Assembly (NCBI GenBank): GCA_965603825.1
Contig: CBFDEM010000039.1
Location: 372,001-436,000 of the forward strand
DNA from: Blepharisma stoltei ATCC 30299
Taxonomy: Eukaryota; Protista; Ciliophora
Direction of reading: 5' to 3'
DNA length: 64,000 nt
Part shown: one piece after another, positions 1-17,660 of the stretch
Layout of the letters: every line of letters begins with the position of its first letter
Position numbering within the stretch: position 1 is the stretch's first letter
Program-made: the position numbers and the translations under genes
The notes under the pieces: generated by a model
Seen by the model: only the letters and a program-made list of their open reading frames with translations
Databases searched by the model: none
What the model was told of the DNA's origin: nothing

Positions 1-225
1 ATGAATCAAAGATTTGTATTTTTCTTGCCCAGCTGTGTCCCAGAAATGCAACTTAAGAAGTTGTTCATCTTTGTATAAAGTCCTTGATAAAAAATCAATC
101 CCAATCGTCGCTGTGTATGCAGGGTCAAATATATTGTACATATACCGACAGATTAAGGAAGTCTTTCCTACATTTACATCTCCCAAGAAGATTACTTTAT
201 ATTGTACATATGGGATGCCTTTCAT
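1..225 (-). CDS. Rab-family small GTPase (Rab6-like), 5' part; runs off the window edge
   Basis: Hand translation from ATG 225: MKGIPYVQYKVIFLGDVNVGKTSLICRYMYNIFDPAYTATIGIDFLSRTLYKDEQLLKLHFWDTAGQEKYKSLIH. It has the P-loop GxxxxGKT, switch I TIGIDF and WDTAGQE motifs. Confidence 0.92.
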   Translation of the reverse strand, partial: MKGIPYVQYKVIFLGDVNVGKTSLICRYMYNIFDPAYTATIGIDFLSRTLYKDEQLLKLHFWDTAGQEKYKSLIH

Positions 226-613
226 TTTATAATTCCATTAAAAAATTGCAATTGAGAAACCAAGAATACATGAGCTGGCCTAATACGTAGAAAATATAAT
301 AATTGAAGTTACGGATTTAGGAATATTTTTATATTTAGATTAATTTGTTTTTGACAATAATAATGGTAATTATATAACTGATTATTGTAAGAAAAAGAAA
401 GATATCTAATTTTTTCTTAATTTTTGGTTTCAAAAATTTTTTAATACATTTCACTAATTTTTTTCAGGCGTTAATTTTAGATAGCACTGAAAAATGTATA
501 AAATAAAGTATTTGTTTTATTAGTGCTTTAGAGCTGACTTCAAAATCAATTCAATAAAATGATTTCCATTTATAATAATTTTTTGGTAAAATATGCTCAA
601 TCCAAAAGGGATA

Positions 614-904: not shown

Positions 905-1137
905 CTTCACCATGATCTATTCATCGCTTAAGCCCTTCATTTCTAGCTATAAAACCCTTATAGAAGCTAATCTTGACACTTATTCTTAGTGCAGACACTT
1001 TTCATCCTTCCCAATATCATCATTTCTTTCTTTTTTCCCTTTCAGTTTCTTTTCCTCTCTCAGTGTTTGCTCATCCTTACCTTCTCTCTTGTCCTTGCAT
1101 GCACTATAGACATTAATATGCATTAAACTATCTAAAA

Positions 1138-1929
1138 TTAACCTAGATGAGTAGGCTGATATAAATATGCAGGGGCTGCTGAGTCTCCTTTCTTTAATTG
1201 CACTTTTAAACGTTTACCAAGGACTTGGAACCCATTAAGTGCCCTTACAGCGTTCGAGGCACTTGTGGGGTTATCATAAGTGAGAAAACCAAAGCCACGA
1301 CTTCTCCCTGAGTCTTTTTCTGTCATGATTCTCGCACTTACTATTTTCCCAAACGGAGCAAAATGTGCAACGAGCTCAGTTTCTGTTCATTCGTTTGGGA
1401 GATGGAACAGGAATAAATTGCAGCCAGACTTCGTCTGAGCCATTTGATGAGAATTCGTTTGGGCTGGAGAGGAAACTTGAATCTGGTCAACTGGAATTAC
1501 AAGGGCATTTTCAGGCTTTTCCCACTGGGTTTCGCCAGTTTGAGAGTTTCAGTAATAAGGGCGGCCGTCTGAAGAAGTGTACTCAACAAATGTGGACACG
1601 AACTGAGCAGGGGCTTGCTTGTAATCGGCAAGTCGTTCTTCTTCGCCATCAGCCCATCGAAGAGTTATATTTTTCTATATAGAGCTGACTGGAAATTACC
1701 TTACAGTTGTCCCTCCAAGATCACGAATGCATTTTTCAGCTTGAGACTTTTTGGCAAATCTTACATAAGCGCATCCGAGGCCTGAATGAAAATTACTTTT
1801 TCCTTGTTCTTTGAAGGCTGATGTGTCAAGAATAGTTCCGTAAGATTCGAAATATTCTCTTATTTTGGTCTCGTCCCATTCTTTGGGGAGCTTAGAAACA
1901 AAAAGCTTCAAGTCAGGTTCAGAGGACAT
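1138..1929 (-). CDS. CELF/Bruno-like RNA-binding protein, RRM-WW-RRM, ~253 aa; 30 nt (1675-1704) must be spliced out; 2 TGA=Trp
   Basis: RRM1 KLFVSKLP...GCAYVRF...LRWADGEEERL; WW domain FVEYTSSDGRPYY(W)NSQTGETQWEKP; C-terminal RRM GCNLFLFHLPNE(W)...GFGFLTYDNPTSASNAVRALNGFQVLGKRLKVQLKK, matching CELF RRM3. Confidence 0.9.
1675..1704 (-). other. 30-nt intervening sequence interpreted as a nested intron: inner 1685-1699, outer 1700-1704 plus 1675-1684
   Basis: Minus strand GTAAG[GTAATTTCCAGTCAG]CTCTATATAG contains in-frame TAA and TAG. The inner unit and the reconstituted outer unit are each 15 nt, GT...AG, with A at position 10. Confidence 0.7.
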
Positions 1930-15869: not shown

Positions 15870-17660
15870 ATGTTATTGCACAATTGCAGAAGATCCGCTT
15901 CATCTGAATTCCATCACCTATTCAAGCTCCTAGTTCCAGAAAAGACCCTGCTAATGAAATTTGCATTTTCTTTAACAGTTTCTTCTGGAGTAAGTCTCTG
16001 CTTTCCTCTAGCCTTGGTAAACACTATTTAGCAAGATATATATAACCTATGTGCCGTTCCTACCACATCTCAGCATGAAATTGTCAGAGTTGTAGGAAAA
16101 TGAACCGCTGTCTTTGGAGCTGGTGCATTATCCACCTATATGAGAAGATTGGCCATTGAGGATCTGGTATGGTCTATATAGTCAAATACTGTTGCAATGA
16201 AAATGAGAATTGAATTTTTCGAAGACCTTTTAAGAAAGAAATACCAGGTTTTCGGAGAAAACACAACAGGGGACTTGTCACATCAGCTGAATAGTGATAT
16301 ATGGACAATTGCGTACACAATAACGAATGAATTTTCTTCTGCGATGCGTGGCGTAGCTTTTTTCACTGGCGGGGCAGGATTTTTGTTATATACGTGCCCT
16401 CCGCTTACGATGATTTCTTTGTTTCCGATGATGGCGCTTGCATCGATTTCAAAATATTATGGAAATCTGCTTAGGAGGGAAAGGGAGACTCAAGCTATTT
16501 ATTTAAGGCAGCTGAACTCGTTTGCACAAGAAAGACTTGTTCAGATAAAGACAATTAAGCATTTTACTGCTGAAGGTATTGAGCTTAAGAAATACGCAGA
16601 AAAGCAGACAAAAGTATACAATAAAGCTATTGATGTAGCAAGGTATTCAGCAAAGCACCATGCTCTGATGGAAGCAATGGGCCAAAATGCAGTTCTATGA
16701 TGCTTAGGTTATGGAGCTTATCTGATTTCTACAGGCTCTGGGCTAAGTGTAGGAGCTTTAACAGCTTTTGCAATGTATAGTGTCTATGCTGGGCTAGGAT
16801 TCAGATTATTAGCCTCAGGCTACACTGAATTAAAAAAGGCAGCCGGCGTTTACAATAAAATTCTCGAAACAAAATCTTCTATCGATGACAAAGAAGAAAT
16901 TTTAATTTCCCCAACAATTTTGCCAAAATCCACAGTAGGACGTAATTTTTAAACAGCTTCCATTATCTTCAAAAATGTCTCCTTCACCTATCCAGGAAGA
17001 GAAATTCCAGTGCTGGATAATATTAACCTAGAGATCAAATCTGGAGAAATATGGGGAATAGTAGGGCCAAGTGGCTGCGGAAAGTCAACTTTATTTCATT
17101 TATTAACTCATCTTTATGCGCCGACCTCTGGGCTAATATATATTGATAACGTAGATATCCACACAAAGCCAGCTTGGTGGGCACGACAACAAATTTCTAT
17201 TGTAAGCCAAGAAGCTCCCTTGTTTTCAGGAAGTATCCTAGACAACATAAAATATTCAAATCCAAATGCGACGATGGAAGAAGTTATTGATGCCTGCAAG
17301 AGAGCAGATGCGTATGATTTTATCAATAACTTTGAGGATAAGTTTGATAGTGAAGTAGGAGAAGGAGGCTCTGCTCTTTCTGGAGGACAAAAGCAAAGAG
17401 TGGCAATTGCGAGGGCACTTTTGAAGACACCTCATATGCTTCTTTTAGATGAAGCAACGTCTGGGTTAGATCATCAGTCAGAGAAGACTGTGCAAGGGAT
17501 TCTTGAAAGAGAAGTCAAAAATAGGGGTTTCACAGTATTATTGATTTCTCATAAAATCAGAACGCTGAAAGCTCTGACTGATAGAATAGCAGTACTTCAT
17601 GCAGGTAAGATTATTGCTACGGGGACATTTGATGAGTTAAAAGAAAGTAAACATATTTAG
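15870..17660 (+). CDS. ABCB half-transporter (ABCB10/MDL1-like, probably mitochondrial), ~581 aa; introns 16017-16031, 16167-16181, 16942-16956; 2 TGA=Trp
   Basis: TM domain followed by Walker A GPSGCGKS, signature LSGGQKQR, Walker B LLLDEATS. Three 15-nt introns each carry an in-frame stop. Confidence 0.88.
16017..16031 (+). other. 15-nt spliceosomal intron
   Basis: GTAAACACTATTTAG, phase 0, terminal TAG in frame. Confidence 0.85.
16167..16181 (+). other. 15-nt spliceosomal intron
   Basis: GTATGGTCTATATAG, phase 0, terminal TAG in frame. Confidence 0.85.
16942..16956 (+). other. 15-nt spliceosomal intron
   Basis: GTAATTTTTAAACAG, phase 1, contains in-frame TAA; removal joins the linker to SIIFKNVSFTYPGR. 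Confidence 0.88.

Follow-up and report, generated by a model that had tools for sequence, protein, structure and literature searches.

To our knowledge, no spliceosomal introns are shorter than those of heterotrich ciliates, and the reason for their fixed length of 15 nt is still a question. The window, by which we mean the whole 64,000-nt stretch of Blepharisma stoltei DNA analysed here, puts this question in a particular form. In one of its genes, an insert of 30 nt with in-frame stop codons lies near the end of the region encoding the first RRM of an RNA-binding protein. Is such an insert removed in one step, or as two introns of 15 nt, one inside the other? The first-pass annotation had proposed the latter, with two ordered cuts that could make the insert a regulated switch.

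On the minus strand, the gene starts with the ATG at 1929 and ends with the TAA at 1138-1140, in a stretch in which UGA encodes Trp (Table 1). UGA 1549-1551 (-) gives the first Trp of the WW domain, for which the paralog described below has TGG, and UGA 1387-1389 (-) gives the Trp of the motif NEW in RRM2, a codon that is UGA in both B. stoltei copies. With the 30 nt out, the product has 253 amino acids, or 248 if the upstream intron at 1782-1796 is out as well. Its RRM-WW-RRM architecture is also that of the public protein of the paralog (P0157). CELF/Bruno RNA-binding proteins have three RRMs, two N-terminal and one C-terminal, with a divergent linker between. The nearest likeness of RRM1 is to CELF1 RRM1, and that of RRM2 is to RRM3 of CELF/Bruno proteins. 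The earlier label "CELF-like" is therefore apt for both RRMs, whereas the protein as a whole, with two RRMs and a WW domain between them, is not a member of the CELF family. Downstream of this gene and on the same strand, positions 1-226 (-) of the window hold the start of a Rab/Ras-like small GTPase gene, which runs off the left end.

The insert begins exactly 75 codons past the ATG and reads GTAAG-GTAATTTCCAGTCAG-CTCTATATAG on the minus strand (1675-1704, 30 nt); the last strand of RRM1 is encoded after it, by 1660-1674. Its in-frame translation is V R stop F P V S S I stop, with TAA and TAG as the stops. With all 30 nt out, ...LGGTT is joined to KNITLRWADG... and the frame is open to the TAA at 1138-1140. 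The open frame of the unspliced RNA would end at the TAA after 77 amino acids, and that of an RNA lacking the inner unit only would end at the TAG after 79; the exact 77-aa unspliced product has no match among protein records. Both the stop-containing insert near the end of RRM1 and the junction formed by its complete removal had been described in the first-pass annotation, and both were borne out when we re-read the frame. The observation of the insert is confirmed.

Inside the insert there is a sole 15-nt unit of the form GT..A10..AG. If this unit is taken out, 1700-1704 and 1675-1684 join into a second 15-mer with A at position 10. The convincing introns in the window share a consensus of GTA, T9 A10 T11 and TAG, which the re-joined outer unit fits. 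The inner unit has C9, G11 and C13 (a CAG end) and is the weaker of the two; that of the paralog has T9. The earlier description of these units was accurate in its further points also: the intron named for comparison is present at 16167, the convincing intron candidates within the window are 15-16 nt long, and the other single cuts are dead ends, the removal of 1675-1689 alone leaving the TAA and that of 1689-1704 (16 nt) or 1675-1699 (25 nt) shifting the frame. An exhaustive script that took every internal 15-mer found only one 15-in-15 split of the insert; among random 30-nt introns of the form GTA..A(-6)..AG, such a split occurs in 0.7-0.9% of trials (P about 0.007-0.009). We also looked for an RNA fold that would shorten the 30-mer, and found no significant or conserved hairpin (fold z-scores -0.95 to +1.26).

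The region upstream of the insert, taken earlier as exon 1, holds a conserved 15-nt intron at 1782-1796 that had been missed. The intron is in frame and stop-free; if kept, it lengthens the RRM1 loop that precedes RNP1 by five amino acids (NFHSG). In 13/13 orthologous loci this site has a GT..A..AG unit of 15-16 nt, with a stop in 3 and a frame shift in 1, and the public protein of the paralog lacks the 15 nt.

We gathered orthologous proteins and DNA by searching first with a part of the paralog that has no stop, and afterwards with public proteins. In a representative protein search, orthologs made up 4 of 150 matches, the rest being dominated by multi-WW proteins. The B. stoltei genome holds one paralog (G000:C4, locus L002), with 81% nucleotide identity to the window gene. 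Its insert is identical to that of the window at 24/30 positions, and the inner unit at 13/15. Between the two copies the amino acid is kept in 204/239 codons versus 50% change at 4-fold sites. At the end of the coding sequence and the start of the 3' UTR, the two copies share an identical stretch of 46 nt. Likeness continues for ~30 nt beyond it, to about 1104, whereas elsewhere 50-61% of 4-fold sites differ. Two causes come into question for the identity, local gene conversion and a conserved RNA element at the 3' end. The paralog's public protein (P0157, 247 aa, listed as unnamed protein product [Blepharisma stoltei]) does not contain the homologous 30 nt, and the annotation behind it takes its introns only from RNA-seq reads that are spliced. 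Protein P0169 has the same spacing at the site and is insert-free.

The first-pass annotation had suggested a comparison with Stentor orthologs, and the nested layout is indeed found in both S. coeruleus paralogs. A complete internal intron within an external one is present in the window, the paralog, the two S. coeruleus genes and the Stentor-like loci L009 and L019. In these six sequences, both the inner and the re-joined outer unit have the properties of heterotrich tiny introns (15-16 nt, GT..AG, A at 10 or 10-11); the 30-mer taken whole does not. Other heterotrich loci carry different inserts at the site (Table 1). In the public models SteCoe_10259 and SteCoe_14690, both the 30-mer (10 amino acids, VSK.Y.....) and the upstream 15-nt unit are translated, and the two models probably contain unremoved introns. 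In a protein tree, the Stentor group with the 30-mer stands apart from the group of L007, L023 and L024, deeper nodes not being resolved. In L023 and L024 the slot is apparently a tiny in-frame intron that turned coding, its sister locus L007 still reading GT..A10..AG. No isoform of the junction, whether of Blepharisma or of S. coeruleus, turned up in metagenome scans.

Table 1. Positions of the gene, its domains and its introns in the window, and of the homologous insert site in other loci. Layouts are given as outer 5' piece + inner unit + outer 3' piece, in nt.
Feature	Positions	Strand	Basis or layout
RRM-WW-RRM (CELF-like) RNA-binding protein gene	1138..1929	(-)	Reading frame, Pfam
RRM1 coding block 1	1705..1929	(-)	PF00076, residues 9-74 = profile positions 1-62 of 70
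Ordinary 15-nt intron GTAATTTTCATTCAG, phase 1, branch A 1787	1782..1796	(-)	X5 contig, paralog protein, orthologs
Whole 30-nt insert (G000:C39:373675-373704), phase 0, read as a nested tiny intron pair	1675..1704	(-)	Sequence, X5 contig, paralog protein P0157
Outer intron, 5' piece GTAAG	1700..1704	(-)	Sequence
Inner 15-nt intron GTAATTTCCAGTCAG, branch A 1690	1685..1699	(-)	Sole 15-nt GT..A10..AG unit inside the insert
Outer intron, 3' piece CTCTATATAG, branch A 1680	1675..1684	(-)	Sequence
WW domain	1513..1587	(-)	Pfam match at start of piece 1390-1548
RRM2	1195..1419	(-)	Pfam RRM_1 in piece 1144-1386
Stretch identical to C4 paralog, CDS end and 3' UTR start	1133..1178	(-)	46 nt
Paralog insert	G000:C4:710880-710909		5+15+10, as in the window
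S. coeruleus SteCoe_10259	L017:820-849 (MPUH01000164.1:55577-55606)		30-mer, unique 4+15+11 split, same codon
S. coeruleus SteCoe_14690	L018:820-849 (MPUH01000275.1:65856-65885)		30-mer, unique 4+15+11 split, same codon
Uncultured Stentor-like	L009:168-197		30-mer, unique 4+15+11 split, same codon
Uncultured Stentor-like	L019:643-672		30-mer, unique 4+15+11 split, same codon
Uncultured Stentor-like	L020:562-600		About 39 nt; inner unit intact (with TAA); outer acceptor reads AA
L007	1720-1734		Single 15-nt unit, GT..A10..AG
L023, L024 (Stentor-like metagenome contigs)	820-834 each		15 nt in slot without GT/AG, coding LNTEN / LTSAN
L010-13			Single 15-nt intron with TAG
L014-16	L014:1382-1416		35 nt; splits 7+20+8 or two other ways
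L022	550-600		51 nt; Blepharisma-type (5+15+10) start; inner acceptor CG; no stepwise split found

If both units are functional introns, each should carry its own conserved signals. We aligned the inner unit in seven sequences (the window, the B. stoltei paralog, both S. coeruleus paralogs, L009, L019 and L020) and the outer unit in six. Pairwise 4-fold differences among the seven genes are 43-88%; judged by these alignments, their synonymous or free positions are near saturation, that is, close to randomised. In register, columns 1-4, 10, 14 and 15 of the inner unit (GTAA, A10 and AG) are invariant in 7/7 sequences, and the other 8 columns all vary (Fisher P = 1.6e-4, signal versus other columns, seven sequences). 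In the outer unit GTAA, T9, A10 and AG are invariant in the six sequences and the remaining 7 columns vary; invariance is thus found in 7/7 signal columns versus 1/8 others (P = 1.4e-3). According to the published constraint on the single 15-nt introns of B. stoltei, bases 5-8 and 12 are free (PMC9942806 SI). This profile appears twice in the 30-nt insert. The insertion point of the inner unit follows outer base 5 in Blepharisma (5 + 10) and base 4 in Stentor (4 + 11), and both units are still 15 nt. We considered protein coding as the cause of the invariant bases and rejected it. The Blepharisma insert has stops. In Stentor, the invariant GTAAGTAAG (nine bases, 5' end) shows no synonymous change, whereas the flanking codons have some, and of the 10 residues the S. 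coeruleus paralogs have in common only those encoded by splice signals. The nested 15-in-15 reading gains from this comparison, with both signal sets conserved in seven far-diverged heterotrich sequences, and it is very probable that a nested pair of tiny introns is maintained here by selection.

Splice forms were sought in Logan contigs of the public runs X1, X2, X5 and X7, which represent the dominant path only and whose RNA nature is presumed. We took the contigs as RNA because they are gene-length, with stops at about 1149 and 5' ends near 1953-2001. All de Bruijn contigs break at about 1149 because the 46-nt stretch is common to both paralogs. The contigs of X1 and X2, from the same species (100% identity, depth 84-94), retain the upstream intron along with the full 30 nt. 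That of X7, from a sister taxon (about 97% identity), lacks only 1685-1699, retains the remaining 15 nt without mismatch and keeps the upstream intron. In the contig of X5, also from a sister taxon (about 97% identity), all of 1675-1704 is out and the upstream intron is removed. Mature mRNA without both introns is thus represented by the X5 contig and by the paralog protein P0157. The unspliced, inner-only and fully spliced forms are each dominant in some public run, as presumed RNA contigs, the same-species runs having the unspliced form only and the inner-only form coming from the sister taxon of X7. In X7 the consensus outer 15-mer is kept in the dominant form, and a second step would therefore not be fast.

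In B. stoltei, 97% of introns are 15 or 16 nt long and about 3% are longer than 16 nt; splicing efficiency drops with length, and introns shorter than 15 nt are not spliced (PMC9942806 SI). In the route that we propose, the spliceosome would first cut the inner 15-mer, which sits between bases 5 and 6 of the outer intron. Only once it is out would the outer pieces (5 and 10 nt) make a normal consensus 15-mer, and a second reaction would cut this re-formed unit. Double splicing would yield the mRNA for the full RRM-WW-RRM protein. Because the heterotrich spliceosome works best on 15-16 nt, two consecutive 15-nt reactions appear most likely, and we put the probability that they are the main productive route at roughly two in three (0.65-0.7). 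We infer that the inner-only form is an on-pathway intermediate and that one-step removal is minor. Of the reading in the first-pass annotation, the nested 15-in-15 part is supported, and a contig that may be the predicted inner-only intermediate (X7) and one lacking the 30 nt (X5) both exist, each from a sister taxon and presumed to be RNA; an obligatory order of the two cuts would go beyond this.

The alternative that survives best is that of a plain 30-nt intron whose removal takes a single step (donor 1704, branch A 1680, acceptor 1675), with the inner cut an occasional dead-end side reaction. The mature product is identical for the two routes. The unspliced RNA has the donor, the branch A and the acceptor of the outer intron; since the donor GTAAG is intact before the inner cut, it is length alone that argues against one-step removal. 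The small fraction of B. stoltei introns above 16 nt (PMC9942806 SI) speaks for this alternative, as do the annotation pipeline, in which the paralog passes with one 30-nt gap, and the accumulation of the inner-only form in X7, as a dead end would accumulate. Moreover, inserts of 35 nt (L014) and 51 nt (L022) occupy the site in other heterotrichs, the 51-mer without decomposition, and longer one-step cuts may therefore be possible. A single cut, however, leaves unexplained both the invariant GTAA, A10, AG and exact 15 nt of the inner unit in seven sequences and the compensated 1-nt shift of the insertion point, by which the outer unit stays 15 nt. A side reaction yielding stop-containing RNA should, furthermore, be selected against rather than conserved, and the published drop of efficiency with length (PMC9942806 SI) also counts against a one-step cut. 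On balance we regard it as unlikely.

Somewhat less probable still is that the window copy is a duplicate with poor splicing and little productive output, in which the insert is mostly retained, the C4 paralog supplying the protein. This would agree with the same-species contigs X1 and X2, which at their depth of 84-94 keep both the insert and the upstream intron; with the protein collection, where the paralog's protein is present and a full-length protein of the window gene is not; and with the inner C9, G11 and C13, which depart from the consensus of the local introns, the paralog having T9. Should the public annotation lack a full-length model of the window gene, this would agree with a spliced share under the 0.2 cut-off of the annotators; records of this genome may, however, be left out of the collection. 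Nevertheless, the coding sequence is intact and conservative (204/239 codons keep the amino acid against 50% 4-fold change), the X5 ortholog is fully spliced, and contigs hide minority forms.

The X7 contig could also represent something other than an intermediate, if the X5/X7 lineage had lost the inner intron from its DNA, e.g., through a reverse-transcribed intermediate, so that X7 keeps and X5 splices an ordinary 15-nt intron. X5 and X7 differ at 8 sites (about 1.2%) and have 15 differences from the window in common, and both are known from contigs alone. Single 15-nt units exist at the site in heterotrichs (L007, L010), and such a route has been proposed for fungal stwintrons (PMC5639578). 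We consider splicing much more probable than a genomic loss in X7, because the nested state is older than the split of the Blepharisma paralogs and is also found in Stentor; a precise 15-nt loss within about 3% divergence would be needed, and a consensus 15-mer retained as the dominant form would be unexpected. Improbable as it is, such a loss would remove the RNA evidence only, and the comparative evidence for two functional introns would stand. An assembly or sequencing error, with the 30 nt absent from the real DNA, can be dismissed: we found nothing in its favour, two independent run assemblies carry the 30 nt without mismatch, and the paralog and six heterotrich loci have a homologous insert.

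Two consecutive 15-nt cuts, our preferred reading, may be compared with known systems. The inner and the re-joined outer unit each fit ordinary heterotrich tiny introns (15 nt, GTA(A), A10, AG, positions 5-8 and 12 free; PMC9942806 SI, PMC9505925), from which the insert differs in that one intron lies inside another. In fungal stwintrons, a canonical internal U2-type intron lies near the 5' end of the external intron and interrupts one of its splice motifs, in most cases between donor bases 1 and 2; the external intron is unrecognisable until the internal one is out, and consecutive splicing has been proposed (PMC5639578, PMC9024468). The heterotrich insert resembles these in the position of the internal intron near the 5' end and in relatives that have gone back to one intron at this site (here L007 and L010); the diagnostic molecule of stwintrons lacks the internal intron only, and the X7 contig is a candidate for it. 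Unlike them, it keeps the first 4-5 donor bases, the bases that follow being unconstrained in heterotrich introns, and the inner cut would restore a permitted 15-nt length and donor-to-branch distance instead of a motif. Further differences are the intron size (15 nt versus about 50-60 nt), the ciliate host and the occurrence in both Blepharisma and Stentor, where the insert is known from sequence and contigs. In the strict sense, the internal intron of a stwintron interrupts a conserved motif; with its GTAA intact, the heterotrich pair is not a stwintron in that sense, although it would work like one.

At the ratchet points of recursive splicing in Drosophila and vertebrates, a juxtaposed AG/GT regenerates a donor at the exon junction within very long introns. 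Stepwise removal by the same spliceosome would be common to both systems, but the nested insert forms no AG/GT exon junction and its first cut would be wholly internal. A ratchet-point or tandem-intron reading was tried and rejected, as the 16-nt cut 1689-1704 has no branch A at 10/11 and leaves no GT. Introns of the types GGT-AG and GT-AGG in B. stoltei itself contain overlapping GT-AG units with cuts 1 nt apart, of which the shorter leads to a premature stop (PMC9942806 SI). They are another case of competing splice choices in the same genome, but their cuts are mutually exclusive, whereas the insert would be two complete introns removed in series. We scanned the genome assembly (41.46 Mb, 64 contigs) for an inner unit placed after outer base 1-8, with GTAA donors, A10, AG and 15-nt units, and retrieved only the two paralogs and two ordinary single introns. 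Within the scanned patterns (GTAA donors, 15-nt units), the nested insert is a singular locus and not a class. The earlier statement that nothing of the kind was reported for heterotrich tiny introns agrees with the literature that we searched: the papers on the B. stoltei genome (SI included), on ciliate introns (2026) and on the Stentor spliceosome mention no nested, twin or recursive introns, and a literature search for stwintrons in ciliates returned no match.

Would such an arrangement serve a regulatory role? Unproductive splicing or intron retention is a means by which RNA-binding proteins of the SR, hnRNP and CELF types autoregulate. As in these systems, the host encodes an RNA-binding protein, its stop-containing isoforms are abundant and its dominant isoform varies by sample; autoregulating proteins act on their own transcript, and for the window protein the likeness is one of isoforms. 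The difference in dominant form between runs is the one hint of regulation. On this basis we raise, as a tentative and rather doubtful idea, that the ancient nested intron of Stentor and Blepharisma is a two-step gate, in which the weak inner 15-mer would have to be removed first and the output of the CELF-like protein would be set by holding back stop-containing RNA, possibly through its own action. If this were true, the heterotrich spliceosome would measure about 15 nt as a ruler and could not simply span 30 nt.

The locus is kept as exactly 15 + 15 nt with a junction that has moved by one base, and is in this respect a natural experiment on the length rule. Its three isoforms are separable by 15 nt, which makes it a simple, testable substrate that could show whether spans beyond about 16 nt are within reach of the spliceosome, and how it assembles anew on RNA that has just been spliced. 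With the finding, two public Stentor coeruleus models in which the insert is read as 10 amino acids would need correction, and nested "twin" spliceosomal introns would be known from ciliates as well as fungi. It further hints that splicing may control a conserved RNA-binding protein.
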